From positions 1 through 58,780 of the forward strand of contig JANHCV010000019.1 in assembly GCA_025594325.1 (NCBI GenBank): a stretch of 58,780 nt of DNA. Direction: 5' to 3'. Positions within the stretch are counted from its first letter, which is position 1, and each line of letters opens with the position of its first letter. Both the position numbers and the translations under genes were made by a program. The notes beneath the pieces are model-generated. The model ran no database searches, was not told where the DNA came from, and worked only from the letters and a program-made list of their open reading frames with translations. This DNA is from Blastocladiella emersonii ATCC 22665. Taxonomy: Eukaryota > Fungi > Blastocladiomycota. Below, piece after piece: positions 1 to 58,780 of this stretch.

Positions 1-510
1 CGCGAGTACTCTACGCTGACGACCGAGTTTGTGTCTGACGGGTCGGGCAACGTGGCGGGCGTGAACACGGTCAAGGTGGCGTGGCGCAAGGACGACGCTG
101 CTTCGGGGAAGTGGGTCATGGAGCAGGTGGCGGGCACGCACGCGACGTACAAGGCGGACGTGGTGCTGCTCGCCATGGGCTTCGTGGGGCCCGAGGCCGA
201 GCTCCTGACGCAGCTGGGCGTGGCGACGTCGCCCGCGACGCGCGCGGTCGCGGCGGACACGGCGAGCTACGCGACGTCGGTGCGCGGCGTGTTCGCGGCG
301 GGCGACTGCCGGCGCGGCCAGTCGCTCGTGGTGTGGGGCATCCGCGAGGGCCGCGAGGCGGCGCGCCAGATCGACGAGTACGTGCGCGGCGACGGCCGCG
401 TGTCGGCGCTGCCCACGACGGGCGGGATGAGCGCGCGCGCCTACTCGCTCGACGCGGTGCGGCTGCCGGCCGTCGCTGCGGGCGGCGGCGTGGCCACGGC
501 GGCGGTTTGA
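1..510 (+). CDS. GLT1: NADH-dependent glutamate synthase (GOGAT), C-terminal part (GltD-like oxidoreductase domain); 5' end lies outside the window
   Basis: The frame is open from base 1 (REYSTLTTEFVSDGSGNVAGVNTVKV...). It carries the GltD-family C-terminal motifs ADVVLLAMGFVGPE and GVFAAGDCRRGQSLVVWGIREGREAARQID. Stop TGA at 508-510. Confidence 0.9.
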   Translation, partial: REYSTLTTEFVSDGSGNVAGVNTVKVAWRKDDAASGKWVMEQVAGTHATYKADVVLLAMGFVGPEAELLTQLGVATSPATRAVAADTASYATSVRGVFAAGDCRRGQSLVVWGIREGREAARQIDEYVRGDGRVSALPTTGGMSARAYSLDAVRLPAVAAGGGVATAAV

Positions 511-2869
511 TTGCTTGAGAAGAACGAGACGCGAGAACGATTGGTTGTGAGGAGAATGACGTCGATATATATACACTGATATTGGCTTAGAGTCTGATTG
601 CGTCTCTCTCCCCGCTTGTTGTGGTGCGTGTGATCTCAGAGTTTGAGTGGGAGCGGGTGCACGGCAAGGGCGAGCGAACGAGTAGCTCTGCTTCTCTAAT
701 AAGCTTACAAAACGGGCGCGTCGCGCAGTAGTAGCTCCTTGGGTGCGGCGAGCCGCATCGAGACAGATGTCTTGCGAGTACATACTGATCAAGCGAGTGA
801 TCGGCCCACACAGGGCGATGGGCACCGCGCGGCGCGAAGCTGTCTGCGTGCACCAATGAGGGTTCGTGGGACATGAAAGGCCAGGTCTGACACCTCGGAG
901 CGACCAAGGAATCGACTGCAGAAACGTTGTGTTGCAAGGCGCGCGACTACTCTTCCTCGTGGTCGTATTTTGGCAGCCGAATGATGGATGCGCGCTTCAA
1001 AGGAAACATATACAAAGCGGGAATGTGACGTTGTTGCTTTTCCCTCGCAATCCGCGCAAGCACGCGATGCAGCAGCCATGGCAGGGGTTCATGAATCGGC
1101 CCACGGTCATTGGTAGCGCGGCTGGAATTGCCAACGGTCTTGCTCGCTGACAGAAGCTGAGTTAGTTGAGGACTATTGTGGCAGATTGAATGATAATGGC
1201 GTCTGAGACAATCCCGCTTTTCCCTTAAACACTACACATTGATCGGCCCGATGGGCTGAGATGTGTTCCGCGTGGGCAGCGACATCAGCGTTCACTTTGT
1301 CTTGCGAGTACAGCTACGTCACGCCACGGTTCCGTTGCAATAATTTGAAGCTTTGATTACGTTGAATCCGTGCACTGAAATATATTGTGCTTCTCTTCAC
1401 GCACACATGTCGAGGGGATCAACCAAGACGACGCGTTGCTCATAACACGTGACTATCCGCTCAGCGATCACACGCTCTCGAAGCCTCCCACGCTGGTCGA
1501 GCAAGAAAGATTGTCGGTACTTCCACCCATAACTTTACTTTGAACCACCTAGACGCTTTGCGTCTGGTCTTCAATTGAGGGCTTACGCCCTCCGCCACGT
1601 TGGAGCGACGGGTCGCATGGGAGGTCTAGCCTGCTGAAAGTCGCGCGAGACGTTTGAAGTCGCCCCTCATCATCATCAAGTTTCTTGCTACACTGATGCT
1701 CGAGCATCTCTGCGGCGCACAAACACTCACGATACCGCTTGGACTGATATATCCCTTGCGCCTCATTCTCGGCATCCCCTGTGCTCGCAACCTTCCGTTC
1801 AAGTGCACCGCTGGGCAGAACAGTCTCAAAACTCGCAGGTGAGTTTTCGCGACGGTGATGCCGTGGACGAAAGCGACCTTGGTGAACTCATTGTGCGCTG
1901 CGACATGAAGGGTGCCCAGCGGCAAAGTCGACAACGTGGACGGACGCGCGTCAGGTGCTTCGTTGACCGAGGCCGCGGTCGCGTCGCCGTCAACGTCCAT
2001 GGTGTAGTTGAAGCGTACTTGGCTGGGAGGAAGCTCGGCACGATGGACGTGCGATCTTGGCGGAGATGAAGATTGAGGCGGTGAAGAGGTTCACAAGAGA
2101 GGACGGTGAAGAGGTTCACAAGAGGAGACGGTGAGGAGGTTCACGAGAGGACAACAGGCTGTATGTGGTGGCTAATACTAGCAACTGGTCAAAGGAACAA
2201 GAGAGAGAGGGGATGCGGAGGCGCGTCGTCCGATGTGAGCGGGCCGACGCGTCGCTCGGTGAGGTGAGGCGGTCCGCGGCGATGACAAAAGAGATCGGCG
2301 CGGTGCGCGTGACGCGCGTGACGCGGGCGGGGTCGCACGCGTCCGGTGACTGTGGCGCAACGCGGTCACGTGTACTTGATGGCGTCGACAGTCGCGCTTG
2401 GGGAGCTAAAATTCAACGTTGGTTAGCTGCTGTTCATGGGCCAAAAAACATTCAAAACCGTACCCACCCTCGAAACCCGAAATGTACAAGAAGAGGACAG
2501 AGTCGCGCGGGAAACCGTAGCGGCACACTTTTCTACCGCTGTCCTTGTCCTTGTCCTTGTCCTTGCTGCGGCATTTCGTGCAGCTCGCGAGGTGGTGGTA
2601 CAGGTGCGTCTGGTGGAGGCGCAGCAGCTTAATGGAGGGCTGGAAGCCCTCTCTTTAGAGGGGGAAACCAGACCAGGGGGACTCCGAATAGACGGGTGAA
2701 GCCGAAGTGAACCGCCGTGAACCGCCGTGAACCGCCGTGAACCCGCGCGGCTCGCTCCGCGCCGCCCACGTCAGCAACCCCGCGGTGCGGCCACCGCCGC
2801 CACGTCGCCCGTCGTGTTCAAGTCGCATCCGCGCCCGCCGAGCACGCATAGGACGGCTAGCGCCCCTCT

Positions 2870-3587
2870 ATGCGTGCCAGACACCTTCGAGGGCATGGTA
2901 TGTCGTCGCTGTGACGGTGCATTCGCGTCGTGCTGAGTCAGTGCGCGCGCCAGCGAGCCGTGCACTGTCGCTAACCCGCCGACACTCAAGAAGGAGGACA
3001 GTTTGTGGGGCATGTCAAGTCCGAGGTTGTCCTCGTGGCGCGCGCCGACCTGTTTACGTCCAAGGACACGCGTATGGCGCACAGGTTTGACTGACACGCG
3101 TCCCGCCGCGACTGACCTCCAACCTTGCTTCTAGGCCACGTTTGGCGCGGCGACGGGCTCAAGCGCATGGTCGTGACCAAGCCCGAGTGGAACCGTGCCA
3201 TGCTGGCGATCAACGAGGAAGTGGACCTGGATCTCCGCGACGTCGGCGACAAGAGCGTTGGGATCTGCGCCACGGTCGCCCTTATGGTACAACTTCTCAG
3301 CGCTCGTCGTACCCTGACTCGCTCACTCAATCTGGTCCCGACTCGCACGCTGCAGGCAGCGAGCTCCCTTGTCGTCGTCGAGGAGACTGGGATCAAGCTC
3401 GACGAGGGTGACGCAGAGGTACGTGTTCAATAAGACGCGCAAGAGTCCAGGTCTGATCATGCCGTACGCTCACCACCTCGCCCACGAAAAGCTGTGCCGC
3501 AACGACCTTCCGGCCACGTACAAGCGCCTCGGTGCCTACGACATCAACAAAAAACTCAACACGCCGTCTGACCTATTCATCTGCTAG
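2870..3587 (+). CDS. Spliced hypothetical protein (about 139 aa in the simplest model; 3' exon structure ambiguous)
   Basis: GT-AG introns at 2898-2990 (CTAAC at 2971), 3072-3134, 3287-3355 and 3419-3491 join into one frame: MRARHLRGHEGGQFVGHVKSEVVLVARADLFTSKDTRHVWRGDGLKRMVVTKPEWNRAMLAINEE...LCRNDLPATYK. An alternative donor at 3518 and acceptor at 3587 are also plausible. No family recognised. Confidence 0.5.
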
Positions 3588-3759
3588 GCCAAGGTACGCG
3601 TCCTTGCTGCTGCAGTCAGCACACTACTGCCTGCCATCGCTCACTGCTGGCCTCTCGCCACCACACTGTCTAGACGTGCTGGGTTCCAACGTGCGAGCAG
3701 GACTGCCTGTCCTGTAGCTGTATATAATGTGTATTTTTTTACCCCTGCTCGCTGACTCC

Positions 3760-3988
3760 GATATCACACAATATGACGCGATGTCGCGTCATCTCGCAAG
3801 ATCTCAAACCCACCCCGATATCGGCCTAGATAGTGCTACATCGCTCGATAGCAACTCTGGTTTTCCGTGCTATCATATCGCATGATATCGTACGATATCG
3901 AACCTTGATATCGACCTAAATCCTCCAATATTGCGGGTCCGCGGCGGCCCTGGCGGGAGGTCGATATCGCGCGATCTCAAGCGATATC
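3760..3988. repeat. Cluster of seven GATATC palindromes
   Basis: GATATC at 3760, 3817, 3884, 3894, 3907, 3963 and 3983, plus near matches. Mirrored at about 54793-55021. Confidence 0.8.
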
Positions 3989-6446
3989 GCCCATTCTCAG
4001 CCAAGATCGTCATCTACGGGTTTACTGATGCAGCCGTGGGAACGCGTTGCGCCACACTCAATAGACCTTTCCGACCGCCCCCACTGTGTGGCTGAAACGC
4101 CACCACGTGAGCCAATCCCCCGTGCGACGCGGTGCAGGCTTTCCCCCCGGCGCCGCTCACATGATGATACCGCCCGGGCACAAGCCTCGGCCCGGGGGGA
4201 CAGTCGGAAAGGTGAATTGACCAGCTTTGACGCAACGCGAGCAGCGCTCGCTTGGACGCGTCGCGTCACTCCTGTCACCACTCTTCTTGCATGACACGTT
4301 TACTTGGCGCGTCGCGCGTATCGCGTCGTTAAATAAAAGCGACACTCACCTTGCGAGGAGATGACTGCAGGCTAGAGAGCTTGGGGGCGGGAGACGCGGA
4401 CGCGTTGGTCATATCCCGTGAATCGCGTGAAACACGTGCGGGACGGCGTGACTGTACGGGAGACCCATTGCACCCCACTGCGCGCGCGTCGCCTGTGCAA
4501 ACATAGAGGGCTTTAGCCCTGACTCCGTTCGGATGTATGATTTGCGGGACTCTGCTCAACTAGCTTTCCATGGTGTGGTGACAGGATGCAACGCGCGCGC
4601 TTGTGATGGGCTGGCAATGCAAGAAACCGGACGCCTTGTGGACTGAGTGAGACGAGACTGGCTTCAATTGCAGCTATGACTGATATCGTGCTAGGACTCG
4701 TCCCTCGTCGAATACAGCGGGACTCGTGAGCGCGAATCGCGATGCGTCAGGAAAACCGTGCATGTGAAGCTGTTTTTGACTTTTGCGCGCTTTCCGTTTC
4801 TCGTGTTCTGGCGCGTTGGCTGCGGAAGTGGCGGCGGGAGCTGAATATGACCAAATAGACAGCCCTTCATCTTCTGGAACGACTCCATGCACTGCGAGAT
4901 GCTCACATACGCGCACACGCAGCCAGCAACGCTTCAGCGATACGACAATCGATTGAGCGCTACAATATTTCCTGTTGTTGTGTGCCCATGAGAGGCGGGC
5001 ACCATCAAACGCTTCCCAACGCAGTGCGTGCACGTGCAATGCTTGTCTTTTCCGCGCACAAGGCTACTGAGATCAGACTCGTGATGTACGAGGGCGTGAT
5101 AATGATACCCAGCCCGTTGGCCTTGTTTCATTCATTGGACGTGAGCGACTGCTCGATTTCCTTCCAGAGTCTCAAGTAGCGCGAAAGCTATTTCTACTAC
5201 GAAAGCGGTCAACGTTGACGAGATCAACGCAATCGAAATCAAAGCTCTCAAAGAGTTGGAGCCCGAATGGAGGAGGCACTTGCGTCCGCAATGGCCATTG
5301 TGCTCCACCACTCGCGTATCCAGCTCTGCGACGTGATCAGAGTTTAAGCACTCTGACAGACCTCGAAGTGCGCCCATGTCAGACGAAGACAACGTTGTTT
5401 TTTTCAACGTTTTTTTTTTGACGTTTTTTTTTTTTTTTTTTTTGACGGGAGCAGTGGAACTCAACCACGCTTTCCGAGACGTAATAGTTGCGCTCGACGA
5501 GAAAGCCAAAGTCGCTCCACCGCCACATCTGCTGGACGTTAACGTAGTCAAAGGAAAGCGGCTGCTCGCGAGCATTGTTGGCGCCAGTCCAACAGACAGT
5601 GCGCGCTGATGCGCACATCCGCTCTTTGCACGACTACGACAGCAGGGTATATATAGCTGCTGCTGAGATTCGCCATTGAGCTGCACCAGGGGTGCGTGCG
5701 TTGCACACTCTGACTCAGCAAGCAGTAGGCGACTAGGCTGGCTAGTAAGTTGACTGAGCTCCAATGCCAGTTCACACCCTAAGCTGGAAAGAGAATGACG
5801 TGTCGAAATCGCTATAAAATAGGGAGCCAAGAAACAGGTAAAGGTTGCCTCCCCCGTTAGGTCTTGCAGATGGGCATACTTGGCAAGGAAGTGTCAGCCT
5901 TGCGTTCAACTAAGGCCTTGAATGTCTCGGTCGCTCAGCGCCAATAGCGCGGCCGTTTTTGAGCGCGCGCACTGGCGCGTTGCGCTGCTGGTCCGCGGCC
6001 GAGGCAAACGGGTTGATGTTGGAAGCGAACTGCAAGCCCTTGGAGGGGTTGCCAAAGGTACCGATGGGCGCGAACATGGGCATCTTGAGGGCTACACGAC
6101 AGATCAAACGGCGGTGCGCACAAGATAAGGATATCATCACCGCGTCGTACACAAGATAGGATCATGCACAGGAAGCGCGACAGTAGCAACCCGTGCGTCA
6201 TGTTGGCAAGGTGAACAATGACCCTAGTTGAGAGTCATTTCTTAAGCTATATGCGCCGTCAGCGCGTACGCAAGCTTGAGCGGGAACTGGGCTGAATGGA
6301 TTGTCTTGGTTAGCTTGGCCACCTTGTTTTTGAAACGGGACGGCGTGATCTTGCGGTGCAGTGGAAAGCAGCTGTCAAGACATGCGGCCCAGATTCTTGT
6401 TGGGCCAAATGATGACAACGTCAACTTCTCCATTCGTGTCGATGGA

Positions 6447-8787
6447 CTAGGGGTGGGTGCGTTGCACACTCTGTCTCAGCAGTAGGCGACTAGTCCGGCT
6501 TGCTGCCCGAACTTTGAAGTTGGTTCTCGCCCAAAGGTGAATAGAGATTACGATGCAATCGAGGTAAAGGATCGATCGCATCAGGATGGAGTCCGAGGCG
6601 ACGCGCGTGTTTCGCGGCGGCCATTGAGTTACACGCGTCGCGCACCGAGTCCTGCGCCGTGATGAGGACCTGGTCGTTTCAGTCGTCAATCCGCTCTGGA
6701 TGGTGGTCCAGCACGACGTCTGCCCAGCGCGAGCCGAGGAATTCGATCGCACGCTGCGAGGCGTTGTAGCTGCGCAGGTCCTGGAGCACGTCGAGGAACT
6801 CCGCATAGCCTGACTGCCGCATCTGCTGGACAAGGAAGAAGACCGAGTTGAAGGCGAGCCACTGGTCTCAACCGAGGTTGGCATCAGTTTGAGTTCTTCT
6901 GGCCGCTGGCCGCTCCTCGCGCTTCAACGCGTGCTTCTTCTACTGCTGCCGAGTCTCGCCGTCGACCTGCATCAAGTCTCCATCATGAGCCGCGTCCACC
7001 TCGGGCTCTGGATCGCTTTTGACCAGCTGCTCGGATGAAACCGTGAGCGAGCGCGCCATGATGGGCTCGAAGTGGAAAAAGTCGCCAAACGCGAGGACGT
7101 GAAGGCCGCCAAACAGGCGATGGTCACAGCTCGGGTACAGCGCGTCAAAGCGCAAGTGCATGGCGGCAAAGAGCTCGGCGCCGACCATGGAGATCTCGTT
7201 GATGGGGACAGCCTGGACCTTGCGGTACGAGGCTTCGAGCTCGGCCTTGGCTAAGTTGCTCATCGGCTTGGCCGCAGAGACGGCGGTATCAATACCACAC
7301 GTGGCGTGGATCGTGGAGCCGCCAATCGGCGCTGCGGCTACGCCCGTTGGCGCACAGATGTTGAGCCACGAATTGCGGCCCTTTAAAACGAACATGTCGC
7401 GAATCGAGTTGATGACACGGCTCCTACCCGTGCCCGCCTCGCCGTGGACAAGCATGAGGAGCTGCTCGACTTCAGCGCCGCCGCGCTTGATGGCATCGAG
7501 CGCCGACTCGACCCGCTTGATGACGCGTCAGAGATCAACTTGCTCGAGAGTTGCGCTGTTGTTGGTTTGTGAATCGGCGATCAGCTTGCTGGGCGACGTG
7601 TTCACGTCGTTGCGGAAGTCGTTGTTTCACCGGAGCCAGTCGCTGCCCTACTCGAGCATGTTCTCAAAGAGATCAAGCGTCCTTCCACGTGCCGCGAGCC
7701 GGTACCACTTCGTTGGTGGTGCGGAACGGCTTGAACAAGATCATGGAGATCATCGCGCGCGACTTGGTGCTGCCAATGTCGGACGACTGGCTGACCTGCT
7801 TGTTGAACAGCGGCACGGGAACGACCTTGGTCGCGCGCATCGCCACATTGAGCTTGCCAACTGCAGGATGCGTCTCGCGGAACTTGTACCGCGGCTTGGC
7901 GTGGCGACCGCGCTTGGCGCGCGGCGCGTTGCCGTCGTCGGCACGTCGTCAGGTACGGACTGCTGCGAGCGGTTTGTCGCGGCCTTGATGGGCTCCGGAC
8001 AAAGTCGTACAGCGAGTGACTCGAGCCTGCTGGGTCGGTGCATGCAGTGGTCGCTGATCGTGATCTTGTTGGTGATCGGGCGGTTCGAGAACGTAATGTA
8101 CTTGACGTCGTTATCGTCGTCCTGCTGCTCGAGCTCGCGTTCATTGTTCACTGCCGCCGCGCCGTCCTCGCCGATGCGCTGCGCGTTGGTCGTGTTGTCC
8201 GCTGCGTCTGAGCCCTCCGCGTTCGTGACCATGCACAGGAACTGGTAGAGATAGAGGGACATCTGGCGAGGTCTCAATACGCGCGACCATGTCGAGGGGC
8301 TGAATTTCTCGGGGGCAGTGCCTTAGTTGAAGCCACGAGGTTTGTATTAAGTTGAGCTGCAATCACAGCGAGAACGAGAAGCGGAGAACAGGATCTCATG
8401 ATTTCTTCAGAACTCACGCAGAGTGGGTGACACGGGAACGTCTCAAGAGAGAAAAGAAAATCCGAACTGATGAACGTTCAAAAAGTGAATTCATCATCTT
8501 GATCAACACGGGGGTAGGGAAGTGCGCAAAATGCAGAAGTGGACCAAATCGGTCGGGACTCCACAGGATGATGCTATATGTGGTGCCAACCTAGTTGCAT
8601 AGAGTGACCGAGTAAATTTTATTGGAGGATTTGGAGAAAATTGAGGAAAAGATAATTCGATCGCGAGGAAGTCGCGTGGCGCGACGCGTCGCGGTGCATC
8701 ACGTGAGAAACAGCACGATTTTGAGCTCATCGATAGCCCAGCTTGACGCGGAATTCAGCTCGACAGAAACTCAGCCTACTGCTGAGA
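6447..8787 (-). mobile_element. Helitron A: internally deleted Helitron with both termini (2341 bp)
   Basis: 5' end TCTCAGCAGTAGGCTGAG (starts TC, forms a hairpin). 3' end GCCTACTGCTGAGA + GTGCAACGCAC hairpin + CTAG|T. Internal RepHel relics: HRPSRLESL-YDFVR and ILFKPFR linker motifs, then GEAGTGRS, APTGVAAAPIGGSTIH, INEISMV and FGGLHVLAFGDFFHFEP. Confidence 0.85.
6940..7455 (-). pseudogene. Pif1-family helicase fragment (motifs I-III) of Helitron A
   Basis: Walker A GEAGTGRS (K>R), Walker B INEISM (D>N), motif III FGDFFHFEP. Stops and frameshifts on both sides. Mirror at 51326-51841. Confidence 0.85.
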
Positions 8788-9960
8788 AAAAAAGTCTTTG
8801 GCTTGTCCAATGACGCCGTTCACAATCCCACAACTATACAATGCGAAGCGAGGCATAGCTGGTGATTTGACGCATTGAGGGGTTGGCCAATATACTGCGG
8901 TGACATACAGCGGGTTGATGTTCCGTATCGTAATACTACGTGCCTTAAAGAGCAGCTTGAGACTTGATGGGGACGTGGTCAGTTAGTCTTGCTTGATGAT
9001 AGCAGTTTTGCAGGGTCGAGCATGCGCCATTTGATTTTGCTCTGACCGCTCCTCTCAATGACAAGCTGCCGCCAAAGAAGTGATCAAGTTATCAAGGGCT
9101 TGCAGACAAAATCGATGCACTCGAGGTCAAAGCTTTTGTCCAGATGATGACTGAGTTAATGCGCGTGTTTTGCGACGGCCATTGTGTTCCTTGCGCCACG
9201 CACCCAAGATCTTGTTGCGCGGCGCGCGTGATGCTCGGGTCACGCGTGCGCAACTAGCGCTAATTGTGCCACATTTGCCACTGCTGCAATCACGTCTGTT
9301 TGGCGCGAACTGCAACTGGTGACTTGCCACTTGTTTCCCTTTGCTCTCAAAAGGTGGCTGCACCCTCGCTGCAGACGTGAGCTCAAGAGCTCACGTTTTT
9401 GGATCATACAGATACCTTGGGAATCGTGTGGGATCAACACCACCAGCGCCATGTTCCCCTGCGGTACTCATCGGTTCTGCACTGTGATGAGCACACAATT
9501 GCTCCAGTTGTTGAGCCGCTCTGGATGCTGGCCCAGCACAACGTCAGCTTGACACAAGCAATGGTACCCAACCACGCGCTGCAAGATGTTGCGGTTGCGC
9601 AGGTTCTGGAGCACATTTAGGAATCCCGTGTCGCCTGACTGCCACCTTTGCTGCTGACTGCCACCTTTGCTGCACAAGGAAGACAGCAGAGTTGAGGCAA
9701 GCCACTGGTTGCAACCAAGGTTGGCGTTGGTTTGGGTTTTGCTGGCTGCTGGCAGCTCCTAGCGCTTTGACGTGCGCTTCCTTTTATTTGGCCAAGGCTT
9801 GCTATCAAAGTGCATTGGGCCTCCATCATGTGTGACAGCCACCCAAGCCCAAGGTGCGCGTTTGGCCAGCTCCTCAGATGGGAGTGTGAGCAAGCGCGCC
9901 ACAATGGGCTCAAACCGGACAAAACAGTCACCAAGCGCAAGGACGTGCAGTCCACCAAAT

Positions 9961-12446
9961 CATTGGGAAATGGGGGGTCACCCCGCTGCGGTGGATCACG
10001 AAGATCTTCCTAGATCACTGTGATCTACGAAGATCTTAGCCTTGCAGAAATCTAGCCCCGCTCGACCAGTCCGGAGTGGTTCCGCTCGCGAAGATCTTGG
10101 CACCCAACATAGATCTACGAGTGATCTATCGTGCTCGACCACAAATCTATGAAGTAGTCGAGCGCTTGCACTCGCGCAGCGAACGGCTTTGAGACAAAAC
10201 TCGCGCGACGCGTCCTTGACTGTCAAATCACAACACCAATCATCGCTGCCTTTGTCCTCCATAGTCGCGTTTGGAATAAATCAAGCAGTTCACTGGACTA
10301 TCTCTCAGTCGTGCACCAGCTCGTCGCACAGGCGGGTCGGGAGAACCGTGGTTCAAGTGAGCAAACAGGGAGCACCACACATGCAGCGTGACCAACGAAG
10401 TGGGAAGGGGAGAGGGCCAGGGGCATCGATTCCCTCGAGGCGGTGTGCAGGATCGGCGTCAAGGAACGTGAAAATGGAGCTGTTGAAGAGCTGCACAGGC
10501 ACGACAGGAATCAAGGTTGCGGGTGCCTGCCAGTGTGCCTTCAAGCGGGAGCGAGGTCGTAAGCGGGCGTAATCACGATGTTGTAGAGCCGCCAACAACC
10601 TTGCAGGACGGATCAGCGAGTTCCGGCTCGCGCATCTCACCACGTAGCAGGTCGGGCAGAGCAGCGACGGCCAGGATCCGCAGCTGTTTCGAGATCGTTT
10701 GACCACGGAACCACGCGGCGAGGGAGTTGCAGCGTGTCAGTAATGAGATCTTCAGACCTGCGTTGTGTATGCTTGACAAGAGGGGAGGAGGCATGGACCA
10801 ACGCGACGCGGCGAAGCTGTCAAGCGAGGCGGCGGTCAAGCGCACGTGAGGATAGGCGGCGTTTGTTTTGGGCAAAGTCCTTCGCTCAGTCGCCACTGCC
10901 CACCGTCCACCCTTGCCGCCGCCGACTTCCTCTCTCCTCCCCCGCCACCCGTCCTTCCCCCCAACTCCCCTACGACGCATCCAACTCCATGCACTTGCTC
11001 CAGGACTGCATCGAGCACATCGCCAAGGCCTGCGCCGGGTACGAGCCAGACCCTCCTTGCGCCGTTGTGTGCGCGCCACCTCGCCACCTCGTTACCTCGC
11101 ACGAACGCCACCCACTGCTGCATCGCGCTGCGCCGCTGACGACGGCACCGGTCTGCCCTCACTGACGCCTCTCTCGTGCTCCCGCTGTCCAGGTCCCGCC
11201 GCGGCTGATACTGCCCGCCCAAGCCGGCCGACGCCACCCTTCGCCCCCTGGACTCTCTGAACCTCGCTGGCGTCGGCGACGTGGACGCTCTTGTCGATCC
11301 TGCCGTCCTACCCTTCCTCGGGCTCGAGACGGCCTGCGGTCGCATGCTCATGGCGCCGCGTATTGTCGCCGCCATTGAGATCCCGCACAACGTGGCGCGC
11401 GCGTGGCGACGGCGCCCAGCAATCGCAAGTCCGAGGTGCTGCTCAACCTCACGTTCGACTGGAACCGCAGGGCAACAACGTATGTTTGCGATCGTCCGCT
11501 TTGGGCTGCTTCCCGACCAGCGATCTGACCCGGACCGCCCCGCCTATAGAACCTACGCCCGCGGCATTGTCAAGCTGATTGCCCATGGCACCCGCTCGCG
11601 CACCCTAGGCGACCTGTCCCCCTCCCCAAGTTGTGCGTGTGTTTTCGCGTGTCTGGTCGCCCATGCTAACGCCACCACTGGCTGACGTAGCAAAGCTGCC
11701 CGGGCCGCACCTGTTTGCCATTGTGGATTGACTCGCACCTGATCGCACGCTCGTCGACATGGTGTACTTCATTGAGCTGGTACGCGTCGCGCACAATCCT
11801 GACTCGCTTCGTAGCTCACGCCCCAACGTGTCTGTGTAGTTTGCTCCCGTGGTCCAGTCGTACGTGCAGGGGTCGGCGGCGCCCATTGTGGATGTCGACA
11901 TGTTCCGCTGCAGCTACTTCCACTCGCTGGTCGCAAGCATCGAGCGTCGCCGGGCCGCTCACCCGTTTGTCCGCATGACACGGAGGAGGTCGTGCGCCAG
12001 TCGTTCACCAAGTCCACTGCCGCTGCCGCTGCCACTGCGACCGCAGCCTCAGCGGCGGGTGCCCGAGGCGCGAGTCCGTACGGAGTAGCGCTGGATAGCG
12101 ACGACGACGACGACGCGTAGATTTGATGCAGAATACAGATCTGTTTCTCACTCATCGAACTCTCCCGTTGTGTGCTGAGATCTCTCGCTTGGCGAAGATC
12201 GCTTGAAAATCTCACAGATCTCCTCAGCGGCGGGGAATCTACGTTCGTTGCGAAGATCTATTGGCCCTGACGGAGTCGAGCTCGGCTGGACAGGAGGGAT
12301 AGATCTATGGTGAGATCTATAGAAAACATAGGTTTGCAGTGGATTTCTACGTAGATCTTCCCCAGCTATTTTGGCCCTCAAAACCCTAAGATCTATGAGA
12401 GATCTAGCTAGATCTCTTTGAGATCTTAACCCCCAATTTCCCAATG
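9961..12446. mobile_element. Unclassified TIR DNA element (2486 bp) with AT target-site duplication and subterminal AGATCT arrays
   Basis: Left end CATTGGGAAATGGGGGGTCA; right end (reverse complement) CATTGGGAAATTGGGGGTTA. AT on both sides (9959-9960, 12447-12448). Removing the element and one AT restores the Helitron B codons tgt-cca-ttt-ggt-gga. No transposase recognised inside. Confidence 0.85.
10980..12088 (+). pseudogene. Degenerate intron-containing gene relic carried inside the TIR element
   Basis: Protein-like segments MHLLQDCIEHIAKACAG, PPKPADATLRPLDSLNLAGVGDVDALVDPAVLPFLG..., TLVDMVYFIEL|FAPVVQSYVQGSAAPIVDVDMFRCSYFHSL with GT-AG spacers and at least one in-frame TGA. Family not recognised. 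Confidence 0.4.
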
Positions 12447-16577: not shown

Positions 16578-16610
16578 TATTATAAAGTCCAACGCCAAAC
16601 AGAGAACATA

Positions 16611-48820: not shown

Positions 48821-49993
48821 ATTTGGTGGACTGCACGTCCTTGCGCTTGGTGACTGTTTTGTCCGGTTTGAGCCCATTGTGGCGCGCTTGCTCACACTCC
48901 CATCTGAGGAGCTGGCCAAACGCGCACCTTGGGCTTGGGTGGCTGTCACACATGATGGAGGCCCAATGCACTTTGATAGCAAGCCTTGGCCAAATAAAAG
49001 GAAGCGCACGTCAAAGCGCTAGGAGCTGCCAGCAGCCAGCAAAACCCAAACCAACGCCAACCTTGGTTGCAACCAGTGGCTTGCCTCAACTCTGCTGTCT
49101 TCCTTGTGCAGCAAAGGTGGCAGTCAGCAGCAAAGGTGGCAGTCAGGCGACACGGGATTCCTAAATGTGCTCCAGAACCTGCGCAACCGCAACATCTTGC
49201 AGCGCGTGGTTGGGTACCATTGCTTGTGTCAAGCTGACGTTGTGCTGGGCCAGCATCCAGAGCGGCTCAACAACTGGAGCAATTGTGTGCTCATCACAGT
49301 GCAGAACCGATGAGTACCGCAGGGGAACATGGCGCTGGTGGTGTTGATCCCACACGATTCCCAAGGTATCTGTATGATCCAAAAACGTGAGCTCTTGAGC
49401 TCACGTCTGCAGCGAGGGTGCAGCCACCTTTTGAGAGCAAAGGGAAACAAGTGGCAAGTCACCAGTTGCAGTTCGCGCCAAACAGACGTGATTGCAGCAG
49501 TGGCAAATGTGGCACAATTAGCGCTAGTTGCGCACGCGTGACCCGAGCATCACGCGCGCCGCGCAACAAGATCTTGGGTGCGTGGCGCAAGGAACACAAT
49601 GGCCGTCGCAAAACACGCGCATTAACTCAGTCATCATCTGGACAAAAGCTTTGACCTCGAGTGCATCGATTTTGTCTGCAAGCCCTTGATAACTTGATCA
49701 CTTCTTTGGCGGCAGCTTGTCATTGAGAGGAGCGGTCAGAGCAAAATCAAATGGCGCATGCTCGACCCTGCAAAACTGCTATCATCAAGCAAGACTAACT
49801 GACCACGTCCCCATCAAGTCTCAAGCTGCTCTTTAAGGCACGTAGTATTACGATACGGAACATCAACCCGCTGTATGTCACCGCAGTATATTGGCCAACC
49901 CCTCAATGCGTCAAATCACCAGCTATGCCTCGCTTCGCATTGTATAGTTGTGGGATTGTGAACGGCGTCATTGGACAAGCCAAAGACTTTTTT

Positions 49994-52334
49994 TCTCAGC
50001 AGTAGGCTGAGTTTCTGTCGAGCTGAATTCCGCGTCAAGCTGGGCTATCGATGAGCTCAAAATCGTGCTGTTTCTCACGTGATGCACCGCGACGCGTCGC
50101 GCCACGCGACTTCCTCGCGATCGAATTATCTTTTCCTCAATTTTCTCCAAATCCTCCAATAAAATTTACTCGGTCACTCTATGCAACTAGGTTGGCACCA
50201 CATATAGCATCATCCTGTGGAGTCCCGACCGATTTGGTCCACTTCTGCATTTTGCGCACTTCCCTACCCCCGTGTTGATCAAGATGATGAATTCACTTTT
50301 TGAACGTTCATCAGTTCGGATTTTCTTTTCTCTCTTGAGACGTTCCCGTGTCACCCACTCTGCGTGAGTTCTGAAGAAATCATGAGATCCTGTTCTCCGC
50401 TTCTCGTTCTCGCTGTGATTGCAGCTCAACTTAATACAAACCTCGTGGCTTCAACTAAGGCACTGCCCCCGAGAAATTCAGCCCCTCGACATGGTCGCGC
50501 GTATTGAGACCTCGCCAGATGTCCCTCTATCTCTACCAGTTCCTGTGCATGGTCACGAACGCGGAGGGCTCAGACGCAGCGGACAACACGACCAACGCGC
50601 AGCGCATCGGCGAGGACGGCGCGGCGGCAGTGAACAATGAACGCGAGCTCGAGCAGCAGGACGACGATAACGACGTCAAGTACATTACGTTCTCGAACCG
50701 CCCGATCACCAACAAGATCACGATCAGCGACCACTGCATGCACCGACCCAGCAGGCTCGAGTCACTCGCTGTACGACTTTGTCCGGAGCCCATCAAGGCC
50801 GCGACAAACCGCTCGCAGCAGTCCGTACCTGACGACGTGCCGACGACGGCAACGCGCCGCGCGCCAAGCGCGGTCGCCACGCCAAGCCGCGGTACAAGTT
50901 CCGCGAGACGCATCCTGCAGTTGGCAAGCTCAATGTGGCGATGCGCGCGACCAAGGTCGTTCCCGTGCCGCTGTTCAACAAGCAGGTCAGCCAGTCGTCC
51001 GACATTGGCAGCACCAAGTCGCGCGCGATGATCTCCATGATCTTGTTCAAGCCGTTCCGCACCACCAACGAAGTGGTACCGGCTCGCGGCACGTGGAAGG
51101 ACGCTTGATCTCTTTGAGAACATGCTCGAGTAGGGCAGCGACTGGCTCCGGTGAAACAACGACTTCCGCAACGACGTGAACACGTCGCCCAGCAAGCTGA
51201 TCGCCGATTCACAAACCAACAACAGCGCAACTCTCGAGCAAGTTGATCTCTGACGCGTCATCAAGCGGGTCGAGTCGGCGCTCGATGCCATCAAGCGCGG
51301 CGGCGCTGAAGTCGAGCAGCTCCTCATGCTTGTCCACGGCGAGGCGGGCACGGGTAGGAGCCGTGTCATCAACTCGATTCGCGACATGTTCGTTTTAAAG
51401 GGCCGCAATTCGTGGCTCAACATCTGTGCGCCAACGGGCGTAGCCGCAGCGCCGATTGGCGGCTCCACGATCCACGCCACGTGTGGTATTGATACCGCCG
51501 TCTCTGCGGCCAAGCCGATGAGCAACTTAGCCAAGGCCGAGCTCGAAGCCTCGTACCGCAAGGTCCAGGCTGTCCCCATCAACGAGATCTCCATGGTCGG
51601 CGCCGAGCTCTTTGCCGCCATGCACTTGCGCTTTGACGCGCTGTACCCGAGCTGTGACCATCGCCTGTTTGGCGGCCTTCACGTCCTCGCGTTTGGCGAC
51701 TTTTTCCACTTCGAGCCCATCATGGCGCGCTCGCTCACGGTTTCATCCGAGCAGCTGGTCAAAAGCGATCCAGAGCCCGAGGTGGACGCGGCTCATGATG
51801 GAGACTTGATGCAGGTCGACGGCGAGACTCGGCAGCAGTAGAAGAAGCACGCGTTGAAGCGCGAGGAGCGGCCAGCGGCCAGAAGAACTCAAACTGATGC
51901 CAACCTCGGTTGAGACCAGTGGCTCGCCTTCAACTCGGTCTTCTTCCTTGTCCAGCAGATGCGGCAGTCAGGCTATGCGGAGTTCCTCGACGTGCTCCAG
52001 GACCTGCGCAGCTACAACGCCTCGCAGCGTGCGATCGAATTCCTCGGCTCGCGCTGGGCAGACGTCGTGCTGGACCACCATCCAGAGCGGATTGACGACT
52101 GAAACGACCAGGTCCTCATCACGGCGCAGGACTCGGTGCGCGACGCGTGTAACTCAATGGCCGCCGCGAAACACGCGCGTCGCCTCGGACTCCATCCTGA
52201 TGCGATCGATCCTTTACCTCGATTGCATCGTAATCTCTATTCACCTTTGGGCGAGAACCAACTTCAAAGTTCGGGCAGCAAGCCGGACTAGTCGCCTACT
52301 GCTGAGACAGAGTGTGCAACGCACCCACCCCTAG
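49994..52334 (+). mobile_element. Mirror copy of Helitron A
   Basis: Mirror of 6447-8787. Confidence 0.85.
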
Positions 52335-55193
52335 TCCATCGACACGAATGGAGAAGTTGACGTTGTCATCATTTGGCCCAACAAGAATCTGGGCCGCATG
52401 TCTTGACAGCTGCTTTCCACTGCACCGCAAGATCACGCCGTCCCGTTTCAAAAACAAGGTGGCCAAGCTAACCAAGACAATCCATTCAGCCCAGTTCCCG
52501 CTCAAGCTTGCGTACGCGCTGACGGCGCATATAGCTTAAGAAATGACTCTCAACTAGGGTCATTGTTCACCTTGCCAACATGACGCACGGGTTGCTACTG
52601 TCGCGCTTCCTGTGCATGATCCTATCTTGTGTACGACGCGGTGATGATATCCTTATCTTGTGCGCACCGCCGTTTGATCTGTCGTGTAGCCCTCAAGATG
52701 CCCATGTTCGCGCCCATCGGTACCTTTGGCAACCCCTCCAAGGGCTTGCAGTTCGCTTCCAACATCAACCCGTTTGCCTCGGCCGCGGACCAGCAGCGCA
52801 ACGCGCCAGTGCGCGCGCTCAAAAACGGCCGCGCTATTGGCGCTGAGCGACCGAGACATTCAAGGCCTTAGTTGAACGCAAGGCTGACACTTCCTTGCCA
52901 AGTATGCCCATCTGCAAGACCTAACGGGGGAGGCAACCTTTACCTGTTTCTTGGCTCCCTATTTTATAGCGATTTCGACACGTCATTCTCTTTCCAGCTT
53001 AGGGTGTGAACTGGCATTGGAGCTCAGTCAACTTACTAGCCAGCCTAGTCGCCTACTGCTTGCTGAGTCAGAGTGTGCAACGCACGCACCCCTGGTGCAG
53101 CTCAATGGCGAATCTCAGCAGCAGCTATATATACCCTGCTGTCGTAGTCGTGCAAAGAGCGGATGTGCGCATCAGCGCGCACTGTCTGTTGGACTGGCGC
53201 CAACAATGCTCGCGAGCAGCCGCTTTCCTTTGACTACGTTAACGTCCAGCAGATGTGGCGGTGGAGCGACTTTGGCTTTCTCGTCGAGCGCAACTATTAC
53301 GTCTCGGAAAGCGTGGTTGAGTTCCACTGCTCCCGTCAAAAAAAAAAAAAAAAAAAACGTCAAAAAAAAAACGTTGAAAAAAACAACGTTGTCTTCGTCT
53401 GACATGGGCGCACTTCGAGGTCTGTCAGAGTGCTTAAACTCTGATCACGTCGCAGAGCTGGATACGCGAGTGGTGGAGCACAATGGCCATTGCGGACGCA
53501 AGTGCCTCCTCCATTCGGGCTCCAACTCTTTGAGAGCTTTGATTTCGATTGCGTTGATCTCGTCAACGTTGACCGCTTTCGTAGTAGAAATAGCTTTCGC
53601 GCTACTTGAGACTCTGGAAGGAAATCGAGCAGTCGCTCACGTCCAATGAATGAAACAAGGCCAACGGGCTGGGTATCATTATCACGCCCTCGTACATCAC
53701 GAGTCTGATCTCAGTAGCCTTGTGCGCGGAAAAGACAAGCATTGCACGTGCACGCACTGCGTTGGGAAGCGTTTGATGGTGCCCGCCTCTCATGGGCACA
53801 CAACAACAGGAAATATTGTAGCGCTCAATCGATTGTCGTATCGCTGAAGCGTTGCTGGCTGCGTGTGCGCGTATGTGAGCATCTCGCAGTGCATGGAGTC
53901 GTTCCAGAAGATGAAGGGCTGTCTATTTGGTCATATTCAGCTCCCGCCGCCACTTCCGCAGCCAACGCGCCAGAACACGAGAAACGGAAAGCGCGCAAAA
54001 GTCAAAAACAGCTTCACATGCACGGTTTTCCTGACGCATCGCGATTCGCGCTCACGAGTCCCGCTGTATTCGACGAGGGACGAGTCCTAGCACGATATCA
54101 GTCATAGCTGCAATTGAAGCCAGTCTCGTCTCACTCAGTCCACAAGGCGTCCGGTTTCTTGCATTGCCAGCCCATCACAAGCGCGCGCGTTGCATCCTGT
54201 CACCACACCATGGAAAGCTAGTTGAGCAGAGTCCCGCAAATCATACATCCGAACGGAGTCAGGGCTAAAGCCCTCTATGTTTGCACAGGCGACGCGCGCG
54301 CAGTGGGGTGCAATGGGTCTCCCGTACAGTCACGCCGTCCCGCACGTGTTTCACGCGATTCACGGGATATGACCAACGCGTCCGCGTCTCCCGCCCCCAA
54401 GCTCTCTAGCCTGCAGTCATCTCCTCGCAAGGTGAGTGTCGCTTTTATTTAACGACGCGATACGCGCGACGCGCCAAGTAAACGTGTCATGCAAGAAGAG
54501 TGGTGACAGGAGTGACGCGACGCGTCCAAGCGAGCGCTGCTCGCGTTGCGTCAAAGCTGGTCAATTCACCTTTCCGACTGTCCCCCCGGGCCGAGGCTTG
54601 TGCCCGGGCGGTATCATCATGTGAGCGGCGCCGGGGGGAAAGCCTGCACCGCGTCGCACGGGGGATTGGCTCACGTGGTGGCGTTTCAGCCACACAGTGG
54701 GGGCGGTCGGAAAGGTCTATTGAGTGTGGCGCAACGCGTTCCCACGGCTGCATCAGTAAACCCGTAGATGACGATCTTGGCTGAGAATGGGCGATATCGC
54801 TTGAGATCGCGCGATATCGACCTCCCGCCAGGGCCGCCGCGGACCCGCAATATTGGAGGATTTAGGTCGATATCAAGGTTCGATATCGTACGATATCATG
54901 CGATATGATAGCACGGAAAACCAGAGTTGCTATCGAGCGATGTAGCACTATCTAGGCCGATATCGGGGTGGGTTTGAGATCTTGCGAGATGACGCGACAT
55001 CGCGTCATATTGTGTGATATCGGAGTCAGCGAGCAGGGGTAAAAAAATACACATTATATACAGCTACAGGACAGGCAGTCCTGCTCGCACGTTGGAACCC
55101 AGCACGTCTAGACAGTGTGGTGGCGAGAGGCCAGCAGTGAGCGATGGCAGGCAGTAGTGTGCTGACTGCAGCAGCAAGGACGCGTACCTTGGC

Positions 55194-55911
55194 CTAGCAG
55201 ATGAATAGGTCAGACGGCGTGTTGAGTTTTTTGTTGATGTCGTAGGCACCGAGGCGCTTGTACGTGGCCGGAAGGTCGTTGCGGCACAGCTTTTCGTGGG
55301 CGAGGTGGTGAGCGTACGGCATGATCAGACCTGGACTCTTGCGCGTCTTATTGAACACGTACCTCTGCGTCACCCTCGTCGAGCTTGATCCCAGTCTCCT
55401 CGACGACGACAAGGGAGCTCGCTGCCTGCAGCGTGCGAGTCGGGACCAGATTGAGTGAGCGAGTCAGGGTACGACGAGCGCTGAGAAGTTGTACCATAAG
55501 GGCGACCGTGGCGCAGATCCCAACGCTCTTGTCGCCGACGTCGCGGAGATCCAGGTCCACTTCCTCGTTGATCGCCAGCATGGCACGGTTCCACTCGGGC
55601 TTGGTCACGACCATGCGCTTGAGCCCGTCGCCGCGCCAAACGTGGCCTAGAAGCAAGGTTGGAGGTCAGTCGCGGCGGGACGCGTGTCAGTCAAACCTGT
55701 GCGCCATACGCGTGTCCTTGGACGTAAACAGGTCGGCGCGCGCCACGAGGACAACCTCGGACTTGACATGCCCCACAAACTGTCCTCCTTCTTGAGTGTC
55801 GGCGGGTTAGCGACAGTGCACGGCTCGCTGGCGCGCGCACTGACTCAGCACGACGCGAATGCACCGTCACAGCGACGACATACCATGCCCTCGAAGGTGT
55901 CTGGCACGCAT
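55194..55911 (-). CDS. Mirror copy of the spliced hypothetical gene
   Basis: Mirror of 2870-3587. Confidence 0.5.
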
Positions 55912-58270
55912 AGAGGGGCGCTAGCCGTCCTATGCGTGCTCGGCGGGCGCGGATGCGACTTGAACACGACGGGCGACGTGGCGGCGGTGGCCGCACCGCG
56001 GGGTTGCTGACGTGGGCGGCGCGGAGCGAGCCGCGCGGGTTCACGGCGGTTCACGGCGGTTCACGGCGGTTCACTTCGGCTTCACCCGTCTATTCGGAGT
56101 CCCCCTGGTCTGGTTTCCCCCTCTAAAGAGAGGGCTTCCAGCCCTCCATTAAGCTGCTGCGCCTCCACCAGACGCACCTGTACCACCACCTCGCGAGCTG
56201 CACGAAATGCCGCAGCAAGGACAAGGACAAGGACAAGGACAGCGGTAGAAAAGTGTGCCGCTACGGTTTCCCGCGCGACTCTGTCCTCTTCTTGTACATT
56301 TCGGGTTTCGAGGGTGGGTACGGTTTTGAATGTTTTTTGGCCCATGAACAGCAGCTAACCAACGTTGAATTTTAGCTCCCCAAGCGCGACTGTCGACGCC
56401 ATCAAGTACACGTGACCGCGTTGCGCCACAGTCACCGGACGCGTGCGACCCCGCCCGCGTCACGCGCGTCACGCGCACCGCGCCGATCTCTTTTGTCATC
56501 GCCGCGGACCGCCTCACCTCACCGAGCGACGCGTCGGCCCGCTCACATCGGACGACGCGCCTCCGCATCCCCTCTCTCTCTTGTTCCTTTGACCAGTTGC
56601 TAGTATTAGCCACCACATACAGCCTGTTGTCCTCTCGTGAACCTCCTCACCGTCTCCTCTTGTGAACCTCTTCACCGTCCTCTCTTGTGAACCTCTTCAC
56701 CGCCTCAATCTTCATCTCCGCCAAGATCGCACGTCCATCGTGCCGAGCTTCCTCCCAGCCAAGTACGCTTCAACTACACCATGGACGTTGACGGCGACGC
56801 GACCGCGGCCTCGGTCAACGAAGCACCTGACGCGCGTCCGTCCACGTTGTCGACTTTGCCGCTGGGCACCCTTCATGTCGCAGCGCACAATGAGTTCACC
56901 AAGGTCGCTTTCGTCCACGGCATCACCGTCGCGAAAACTCACCTGCGAGTTTTGAGACTGTTCTGCCCAGCGGTGCACTTGAACGGAAGGTTGCGAGCAC
57001 AGGGGATGCCGAGAATGAGGCGCAAGGGATATATCAGTCCAAGCGGTATCGTGAGTGTTTGTGCGCCGCAGAGATGCTCGAGCATCAGTGTAGCAAGAAA
57101 CTTGATGATGATGAGGGGCGACTTCAAACGTCTCGCGCGACTTTCAGCAGGCTAGACCTCCCATGCGACCCGTCGCTCCAACGTGGCGGAGGGCGTAAGC
57201 CCTCAATTGAAGACCAGACGCAAAGCGTCTAGGTGGTTCAAAGTAAAGTTATGGGTGGAAGTACCGACAATCTTTCTTGCTCGACCAGCGTGGGAGGCTT
57301 CGAGAGCGTGTGATCGCTGAGCGGATAGTCACGTGTTATGAGCAACGCGTCGTCTTGGTTGATCCCCTCGACATGTGTGCGTGAAGAGAAGCACAATATA
57401 TTTCAGTGCACGGATTCAACGTAATCAAAGCTTCAAATTATTGCAACGGAACCGTGGCGTGACGTAGCTGTACTCGCAAGACAAAGTGAACGCTGATGTC
57501 GCTGCCCACGCGGAACACATCTCAGCCCATCGGGCCGATCAATGTGTAGTGTTTAAGGGAAAAGCGGGATTGTCTCAGACGCCATTATCATTCAATCTGC
57601 CACAATAGTCCTCAACTAACTCAGCTTCTGTCAGCGAGCAAGACCGTTGGCAATTCCAGCCGCGCTACCAATGACCGTGGGCCGATTCATGAACCCCTGC
57701 CATGGCTGCTGCATCGCGTGCTTGCGCGGATTGCGAGGGAAAAGCAACAACGTCACATTCCCGCTTTGTATATGTTTCCTTTGAAGCGCGCATCCATCAT
57801 TCGGCTGCCAAAATACGACCACGAGGAAGAGTAGTCGCGCGCCTTGCAACACAACGTTTCTGCAGTCGATTCCTTGGTCGCTCCGAGGTGTCAGACCTGG
57901 CCTTTCATGTCCCACGAACCCTCATTGGTGCACGCAGACAGCTTCGCGCCGCGCGGTGCCCATCGCCCTGTGTGGGCCGATCACTCGCTTGATCAGTATG
58001 TACTCGCAAGACATCTGTCTCGATGCGGCTCGCCGCACCCAAGGAGCTACTACTGCGCGACGCGCCCGTTTTGTAAGCTTATTAGAGAAGCAGAGCTACT
58101 CGTTCGCTCGCCCTTGCCGTGCACCCGCTCCCACTCAAACTCTGAGATCACACGCACCACAACAAGCGGGGAGAGAGACGCAATCAGACTCTAAGCCAAT
58201 ATCAGTGTATATATATCGACGTCATTCTCCTCACAACCAATCGTTCTCGCGTCTCGTTCTTCTCAAGCAA

Positions 58271-58780
58271 TCAAACCGCCGCCGTGGCCACGCCGCCGCC
58301 CGCAGCGACGGCCGGCAGCCGCACCGCGTCGAGCGAGTAGGCGCGCGCGCTCATCCCGCCCGTCGTGGGCAGCGCCGACACGCGGCCGTCGCCGCGCACG
58401 TACTCGTCGATCTGGCGCGCCGCCTCGCGGCCCTCGCGGATGCCCCACACCACGAGCGACTGGCCGCGCCGGCAGTCGCCCGCCGCGAACACGCCGCGCA
58501 CCGACGTCGCGTAGCTCGCCGTGTCCGCCGCGACCGCGCGCGTCGCGGGCGACGTCGCCACGCCCAGCTGCGTCAGGAGCTCGGCCTCGGGCCCCACGAA
58601 GCCCATGGCGAGCAGCACCACGTCCGCCTTGTACGTCGCGTGCGTGCCCGCCACCTGCTCCATGACCCACTTCCCCGAAGCAGCGTCGTCCTTGCGCCAC
58701 GCCACCTTGACCGTGTTCACGCCCGCCACGTTGCCCGACCCGTCAGACACAAACTCGGTCGTCAGCGTAGAGTACTCGCG
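58271..58780 (-). CDS. GLT1: Mirror copy of the glutamate synthase C-terminus
   Basis: Identical mirror of 1-510. Confidence 0.9.
   Translation of the reverse strand, partial: REYSTLTTEFVSDGSGNVAGVNTVKVAWRKDDAASGKWVMEQVAGTHATYKADVVLLAMGFVGPEAELLTQLGVATSPATRAVAADTASYATSVRGVFAAGDCRRGQSLVVWGIREGREAARQIDEYVRGDGRVSALPTTGGMSARAYSLDAVRLPAVAAGGGVATAAV

Follow-up and report, generated by a model that had tools for sequence, protein, structure and literature searches.

A 58.8-kb palindrome around a DIRS-type retrotransposon in Blastocladiella emersonii: probable evidence of a real inverted duplication

This study concerns contig JANHCV010000019.1 (58,780 bp; hereafter C12) of genome assembly GCA_025594325.1 of the fungus Blastocladiella emersonii ATCC 22665, the whole of which was analysed (the window) and which reads from end to end as a single large palindrome; other contigs of this assembly are likewise referred to by a C and a number. 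Employing a combined approach of mirror comparison, protein and repeat analysis and contigs assembled from public sequencing reads, we conclude with moderate confidence that C12 represents a real inverted duplication of approximately 58.8 kb, in which two copies of a 26.2-kb stretch, rich in transposons and tRNA genes and beginning within the 3' end of GLT1, are mirrored around one DIRS-type retrotransposon, and that it likely arose by a fold-back event.

Geometry of the palindrome

When the window was set against its own reverse complement, base x was found to pair with base 58781-x, such that positions 1..26446 match 58780..32335 with no insertion or deletion and with one mismatch (26,445 of 26,446 positions mirrored per arm), leaving a non-palindromic centre of 5,888 bp at 26447-32334. 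The symmetry asserted in a preliminary description of this DNA, running from the window edges to 26446/32335 with no net indel, is thus borne out base by base. Both arms stop at the contig ends, the window being the entire contig, and after homopolymer compression they are exactly identical at 20,092 letters each. The principal features, which include the inverted terminal repeats (ITRs) of the central element, are as follows.

1 to 26446: left palindrome arm, including the left inverted end of the retrotransposon (mirror comparison; identical to the right arm when homopolymer-compressed).
32335 to 58780: right palindrome arm (mirror comparison; a read-derived contig leads from the flank via the whole inverted end into the right end of the core).
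26447 to 32334, plus strand: unique core, the interior of the DIRS-type retrotransposon, which occurs once in the assembly.
26232 to 26446: left ITR, the innermost 215 bp of the left arm (internal 43-nt copy, related fragment on C20, end of mirroring).
32335 to 32549: right ITR, the innermost 215 bp of the right arm (mirror of 26232-26446).
22748: the sole difference between the arms.

The single mismatch consists of an A at 22748 and, on the mirrored strand, a G at 36033; it reads AAG versus AGG and therefore vanishes on homopolymer compression. In a pattern count over the whole assembly, a 35-mer carrying the A form was found solely at 22731-22765, while the corresponding 35-mer with G occurred 67 times, once in the right arm and 66 times in further members of a Harbinger transposon family, of which G is the usual form at this site. 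An asymmetric polishing error is unlikely because the polisher meets the same context in both arms, and polishing noise was disfavoured as the source of the mismatch on this ground together with the distribution of the two forms. The difference at 22748/36033, which lies outside the stretch compared with reads, is more likely to be a true difference between two physical arms, as judged from these pattern counts.

A search for nested palindromes inside the arm turned up only an inverted pair of tRNA-Thr genes and a 69-nt transposon repeat. The outer 3 kb of the arm (window 1-3000) has no match in the assembly besides the opposite arm, dispersed repeats aside; one such dispersed repeat, of 374 bp, occupies window 2006-2379.

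The central DIRS-type element

The preliminary description had proposed a retrotransposon as the spacer, and this notion is substantiated by the finding that the core encodes a reverse transcriptase (RT). The predicted open reading frames (ORFs) and internal repeats of the core are listed below.

28531 to 29523, plus strand: RT ORF (Pfam RVT_1, E = 2.3e-10).
29496 to 30785, plus strand: ORF resembling RNase H and Dam-type methyltransferase (ESM Atlas look-alikes).
30626 to 31678, plus strand: putative tyrosine recombinase ORF (weak Pfam match and Atlas look-alikes).
31753 to 32045: internal complementary region with copies of the outer tips of the element (repeat search).

The RVT_1 match scores 41 bits against a curated cut-off of 29.6. 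The second ORF gave no Pfam match, its look-alikes in the ESM Atlas being clusters with RT_RNaseH and Dam at scores of 0.93-0.96. The recombinase ORF gave a weak match to Pfam Phage_integrase (E = 0.0083; 16.4 bits, under the cut-off of 27.1), and its Atlas look-alikes, at 0.98, are eukaryotic clusters of the 'phage integrase family'. No rve integrase was detected in the core by the Pfam search, and the frames of the RT and the recombinase are both open. Within the internal complementary region, one tip of the element is copied at 31753-31795 (43 nt at 98%) and the other at 32016-32045 (30 nt at 90%). Elements on the DIRS1 plan combine an RT, an RNase H/methylase and a tyrosine recombinase with inverted terminal repeats, and their tips have complementary copies in an internal region. 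Judged by its predicted RT, RNase H/methylase-like and tyrosine recombinase ORFs, its ITRs and its internal complementary copies, the core is a DIRS-type retrotransposon.

As regards the length of 215 bp previously given for the ITRs, the palindrome itself cannot define it, the inner ITR end being simply the point where mirroring stops; the outer end at 26232 is nevertheless backed by the internal copy of 43 nt, as well as by C20:1373843-1373918, a related fragment which starts at the same base. Elsewhere in the assembly the core is matched by only one 362-bp stretch, at 72% identity. Distant relatives with an RT followed by a recombinase, in the same order, are present on C7 (712209-715132) and on C17. 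The latter, a DIRS-like element at C17:1510361-1515571, has an RT 31% identical and a recombinase 23% identical to those of C12 and also contains internal complementary repeats; its ITRs, of 238 bp and 96.6% alike, are set between ordinary unrelated flanks. This copy serves as a natural control, its sequence showing that ITRs of about this length belong to the elements themselves and normally stand outside palindromes.

Read-derived evidence on whether the structure is real

Evidence from reads was obtained through Logan de Bruijn contigs of four public runs, all from one sample that is probably the source of the assembly. The comparison covered positions 24600-30599, that is, 1.6 kb of unique flank next to the element, the left ITR and 4.2 kb of core. 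Depth in these contigs is one mean per contig and not a copy number; at this locus the contig breaks coincide exactly with the segment borders, so that every mean refers to a single segment.

In the three runs designated X1, X2 and X3, the flank contig passes the outer ITR end (26231/26232) unbranched, by at least 41-43 nt; in X1 and X2 it ends at 26272-26274, which is the end of a 32-nt stretch common to the internal copy. The body of the ITR (26245-26446) forms a separate contig in X2, from which two contigs continue, one into the start of the core and one (610 nt) that matches 31755-32364, at the core's far end, in reverse complement. One X3 contig of 2,024 nt comprises the flank, the whole ITR and 128 more letters, the first 30 of which are the exact reverse complement of 32305-32334, so that this contig spans the palindrome's right-hand junction. 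In none of X1, X2 and X3 does a contig leave the ITR into a different flank, nor is there a loose end at 26231/26232.

The k-mer depths in X2 were 274.5 for the flank, 283 for the ITR, 410 for the 32-nt triple repeat and 136.4 and 127.8 for the core, with an unrelated 15.8-kb contig at 152.6. These values fit the proportions of 2:2:3:1 (flank, ITR, triple repeat, core) that the assembled structure predicts. In X1 the flank depth was 98.6 against 35.4 for the core, with unrelated contigs at 23.6 and 30.9, and in X3 it was 19.2 against 5.6-8.1, giving a flank-to-core ratio of 2.0-2.8 across the three runs. The dates and depths of the runs suggest that X2 may be the HiFi run and X1 the Illumina run of the genome paper.

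Three other accounts were considered and set aside. A heterozygous or partial insertion of the element could explain such ratios equally well, but it would be expected to produce a branch at the outer ITR end too, and none is seen. An element located at the very end of a chromosome predicts a flank at single depth, but the flank stands at double. Snap-back during polymerase chain reaction (PCR) or other amplification does not apply to an unamplified library (Express TPK 2.0), and the putative Illumina-library run shows the same layout.

An arm depth of about twice that of the spacer had been set beforehand as a test of the palindrome, and it was indeed observed on the contig depths of X1, X2 and X3 for the innermost arm; of the outcomes named as speaking against a real structure, namely equal arm and spacer depth or an ITR leading into another flank, neither was seen in the Logan contigs. 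The preliminary description had left the choice between an inverted duplication and an assembly fold-back undecided, and the presence of one type of flank at the ITRs, together with an arm depth approximately double that of the core, supports the former and disfavours the latter. Amplification left no sign, the core being at near single-copy depth. The palindrome is probably a real chromosomal structure and not an assembly fold-back.

Assembly behaviour and the outer boundary

According to the genome paper (PMC9730499), unamplified PacBio HiFi reads with a mean of 10.5 kb and approximately 190-fold coverage were assembled into 247 contigs by the La Jolla Assembler (LJA). These were cut to 21 by means of purge_dups, minimap2 and manual removal of duplicates, and polished using Pilon with Illumina reads of 65 bp, the DNA for which had been prepared separately; palindromes are not mentioned in that paper. 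The LJA preprint describes an assembler that takes homopolymer-compressed reads as input and lets k grow from 5,001 up to 40,001 by default; a repeat spanned by no read becomes a frozen vertex when k reaches its length. Contigs are the labels of edges, overlaps between contigs are removed and contigs under 5 kb are dropped. A 26-kb exact inverted repeat exceeds almost all reads, and LJA would thus freeze the arm as a vertex; the core edge would then carry the whole arm on both sides, and the adjoining contig would lose its copy when overlaps are removed. This behaviour accounts for the shape of C12 and for its clean join to contig C3. The free-standing palindromic contig as such is a product of the assembler, not of biology.

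The join to C3 (1,500,809 bp) runs through GLT1, the gene for glutamate synthase, the end of which is present twice in the window.

1 to 510, plus strand: 3' end of GLT1, its last 169 codons and stop (C-terminal match to Pyr_redox_2; continues the frame of C3).
58271 to 58780, minus strand: mirror copy of the GLT1 3' end (mirror of 1-510), the only other assembly match to window 1-3000.

The remainder of GLT1 is an open frame of 1,917 codons on the minus strand that runs off base 1 of C3, where it is annotated as 'glutamate synthase [NADH], partial'. Across the join from C3:1 to C12:1, the frame reads ...VAVIHGRDP on the C3 side and continues with REYSTLTTEF... on the C12 side, and the joined frame aligns gap-free to GLT1 of Blastocladiella britannica, Allomyces and Paraphysoderma. 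C3 and C12 are contiguous because the frame aligns across the join without a gap; they adjoin base for base, with zero overlap and zero gap. GLT1 is consequently split over two contigs (C3:1-5751 and window 1-510) and, when joined, comprises approximately 2,087 codons in one frame in addition to an upstream exon. A protein search with the C-terminal part of GLT1 yielded no Logan gene call from B. emersonii; its only match was the NCBI protein from this assembly.

The length of the arm (20,092 compressed letters, near 20,000) might be thought to reflect a limit of the assembler; this was rejected, as the default limit of LJA is 40,001 and no long dinucleotide runs that could shorten the arm further were found. 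From the documented behaviour of the assembler, the outer end of the arm would be a true branch in the reads. The palindrome is probably approximately 58.8 kb long, with the arm being the whole of the exact repeat, because the 20,092-letter arm falls short of the 40,001 of LJA; the earlier wording of 'at least 58.8 kb' was, by the same comparison, probably too generous.

The second outer flank of C12 was not found in the assembly. By the same reasoning it would correspond to another contig end, or to a piece lost to the 5-kb filter or to the purging performed by the authors. A search for this flank by gene order gave no lead: in B. britannica GLT1 lies next to Tim54 and a beta-CASP gene, a neighbourhood that is not kept in B. 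emersonii, where these two genes are at least 330 kb from GLT1, yet also on C3. No telomere repeat was found at either end of C3. C2:1-200 and C11:1-200 begin with AAACCT-type repeats, some units of which are irregular, and which fit the telomere motif of the genome paper; C10, C13 and C18 start in long CTG/CAG runs, and trinucleotide tracts seem to be a common break point of this assembly.

Proposed origin

Yeast inverted repeats up to 30 kb apart have been found to fold back in single-stranded DNA and to yield inverted dimers (Ait Saada et al. 2023; PMC10164571), and human inverted duplications contain a spacer of normal copy number bordered by short inverted sequences (Hermetz et al. 2014; PMC3907307). 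In C12, the core is bounded exactly by the inner ITR ends and no unique DNA lies between the ITRs and the arms; a core bounded by ITRs without extra unique DNA is the anatomy expected of fold-back priming. A chromosome break, or the collapse of a replication fork, beyond the element may have been followed by resection that bared both ITRs on one strand. The ITRs would then have annealed to each other, and DNA synthesis would have copied the flank outward again, resulting in a mirror duplication with the interior of the element as its single-copy loop. A second event, such as dicentric breakage or a template switch, would have ended the copy inside GLT1, and an outer end within coding sequence fits a random event of this sort. 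The arms would either be very young or be held alike by arm-to-arm gene conversion.

Other palindromes in the genome

C12 is not the only large palindrome of the assembly. On C3, positions 432458-482307 mirror 540000-490148, giving arms of at least 49.85 kb with 99.97-100% identity and an overall length of approximately 108 kb around a spacer of 7,840 bp (482308-490147); the arms end before 430000 and 550000, and the sequence differs on the two sides. The spacer contains a Ty3/Gypsy chromovirus at 483828-489219, the long terminal repeats (LTRs) of which measure 163 bp and are 93% alike, and this element is flanked by 1.5 kb and 0.9 kb of unique spacer. Based on this layout, the C3 palindrome does not look to have been seeded by its transposon. 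The presence of near-identical arms beside LTRs that have diverged by 7% is a hint of arm-to-arm conversion in this genome.

The 374-bp dispersed repeat of window 2006-2379 and other short repeats also match the genome in mirror-symmetric pairs on several contigs, for example at C16:292280-292530/319696-319946, C1:345212-345261/365232-365281 and C18:66787-67497/75690-76400, which suggests further candidate palindromes with centres near C16:306113, C1:355246 and C18:71593. A candidate SAE2/CtIP C-terminal domain is encoded at C2:977387-977632, in an open frame of 1,113 codons (42 bits summed). The hairpin-processing cofactor Sae2/CtIP is thus probably present as a predicted protein, and absence of Sae2/CtIP as the cause of the palindromes is not supported.

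Weighing of alternative explanations

The most serious competitor, although we regard it as unlikely, is that C12 is an older inverted duplication kept identical by conversion, at the centre of which the DIRS element arrived later or replaced an existing spacer. The C3 palindrome, in which the arms are far more alike than the LTRs of the spacer element, fits long-lived and homogenised arms, and the open RT and recombinase frames of the DIRS element would allow for a recent insertion. Such an insertion must, however, either have struck the exact centre of a spacerless palindrome or have replaced the spacer precisely. The chromovirus of C3, with unique spacer remaining on both of its sides, has the look of a later insertion, and C12 differs from it in this respect. 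Both arms might instead run on through GLT1 along C3 in a far larger, isochromosome-like palindrome, the contig end being a mere stop of the assembler. Base 1 of C3 fits either end of C12 equally well, no alternative flank is known and C3 has no telomere repeat at either end. With a single unbranched neighbour, however, LJA would extend the core edge until it reached 40,001 compressed letters, about twice the 20,092 at which the arms stop. Two centromeres would, moreover, make a palindromic chromosome of 3 Mb unstable, and we consider this explanation very improbable.

Least probable of all is an assembly fold-back, in which the true order would be flank, element and a different flank, and the right arm would stem from chimeric reads or from a wrong path through the ITR. 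It draws on the fact that the palindrome is an entire small contig with arms that end at the contig ends, on the missing second flank and on the purging of 226 of the 247 contigs by the authors, which implies heavily edited joins. Against it, the contigs of X1, X2 and X3 neither break nor branch at the outer ITR end, and in X2 the flank and ITR stand at twice the depth of a near single-copy core. A chimera from a missed adapter would have no 5.9-kb spacer, the first LJA graph consists of 5,001-mers and is not confusable by a 215-bp repeat, and the library was unamplified; the arms also differ at one base, of which the A form occurs nowhere else in the assembly.

The favoured explanation, a real inverted duplication of fold-back origin, has several points against it as well. 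The assembly does not contain the second outer flank, and the placing of the outer end inside GLT1 depends on the description of the assembler. All four runs share one sample, so that the evidence comes from this culture alone; contigs drop rare variants, and a minority form with another flank is conceivable. No single molecule was seen across flank, core and flank, and the read contigs cover the innermost 1.8 kb of the arm, the double depth of the other 24 kb being a matter of the assembler graph. We infer the fold-back, the dicentric intermediate and the healing of the end purely from the anatomy of the locus. The ITRs are 100% alike here as opposed to 96.6% in the C17 relative, which either fold-back repair or later conversion would fit, and the spacer of the C3 palindrome does not have inverted transposon ends at its borders, so that other origins are possible in this genome.

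Further contents of the arms

The twofold occurrence of GLT1 3' ends and tRNA genes in head-to-head symmetry, as first described, was reproduced: the last 169 codons of GLT1 stand at both ends of the window, and all four tRNA genes that ARAGORN detects in the left arm are mirrored in the right. The remaining features of the left arm are as follows.

12939 to 16682, mirrored at 42099-45842: tRNA cluster with Ala-CGC, Cys-GCA and two inverted Thr-CGT genes (ARAGORN).
17436 to 18539, plus strand: Harbinger/PIF-type transposase ORF (DDE_Tnp_4; Pfam E = 8e-19).
21324 to 24573: Harbinger/PIF element of 3.25 kb, a member of a young, many-copy family (Pfam matches; copies elsewhere).

The two tRNA-Thr genes form an inverted pair of 73 nt. 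The first Harbinger/PIF-type element has possible terminal inverted repeats of 69 nt at 17217-17285 and 21052-21120. The second encodes a DDE_Tnp_4 transposase at 21542-22423 and, on the minus strand, a Myb/SANT ORF at 23643-24302. At least 25 further full-length copies of it are present in the assembly at 98-99% identity, and by this likeness the family looks like a recently active DNA transposon.

Comparison with known systems

C12 resembles the human inverted duplications (PMC3907307) and the inverted dimers of yeast (PMC10164571) in its inverted copies, its single-copy spacer and the inverted sequences at the borders between spacer and arms, and its spacer of a few kb falls within the working range of up to 30 kb reported for yeast (PMC10164571). 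Unlike in these systems, the inverted sequences of C12 belong to a single, intact-looking retrotransposon as its 215-bp ITRs, and the product appears fixed in a wild-type strain and not in a patient, a tumour or a repair mutant. The outer partner event, be it a terminal deletion, telomere healing or a translocation, is likewise not seen in C12, the second flank being absent from the assembly.

Ampliconic palindromes that are maintained by conversion are said to have been described on mammalian sex chromosomes by Skaletsky et al. and Rozen et al. in 2003. C12 shares with them an arm length of tens of kb, an arm identity above 99.99% and a unique spacer of a few kb. Its arms, in contrast, hold transposons, tRNA genes and a gene fragment and not amplified gene families, and its spacer is a transposon the ends of which are part of the arms.

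The DIRS1-type elements, of which Dictyostelium DIRS-1 is the example, were reportedly reviewed by Poulter and Goodwin in 2005. The C12 core agrees with them in the order of RT, RNase H/methylase-like and putative tyrosine recombinase ORFs, in its ITRs and in the internal copies complementary to its tips; it departs from them in being present as one copy in the assembly, in having tip copies that are approximately 220 bp apart instead of side by side and in a Pfam match of the recombinase that is below the cut-off.

In Tetrahymena, palindromic extrachromosomal rDNA is reported (Yasuda and Yao are said to have shown this in 1991) to be formed at a free end by means of a short inverted repeat. 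There, as in C12, a pair of inverted repeats and a short non-palindromic centre seed a giant palindrome, but the rDNA is programmed, amplified and capped by telomeres, whereas the core of C12 is approximately single-copy and one of its arms runs into a chromosome contig.

Implications

The most immediate consequence of this study is for the assembly itself, in which C12 goes beside the start of C3, thereby completing the partial GLT1; one arm of C12 holds only a dead 3' fragment of this gene, and the assembly lacks the contig's other neighbour. More generally, a multiplex de Bruijn assembler turns an exact inverted repeat that exceeds the reads into a free-standing palindromic contig, which resembles an artefact and need not be one.

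With regard to biology, C12 appears to be a further case of a known kind of rearrangement, the uncommon and instructive detail being that the terminal repeats of a retrotransposon themselves appear to have served as the seed. Most known examples of large palindromes with inverted repeats as their seed come from repair-deficient yeast, tumours and patients, and the same anatomy appears to be fixed here in an ordinary strain of a fungus from an early-branching lineage. This raises the questions of how B. emersonii tolerates palindromes and whether arm-to-arm conversion keeps their arms identical. A bolder and quite tentative proposition, which we hold to be possible though doubtful, is that B. 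emersonii regularly makes and keeps large perfect palindromes, with the inverted ends of transposons among the seeds, and that in the case of C12 the break was healed inside GLT1. If this were true, the organism would offer a wild-type system for the tolerance and homogenisation of palindromes of 50-100 kb, which are unstable elsewhere, and the locus described here would be a natural snapshot of DIRS ITRs folding a chromosome back on itself.

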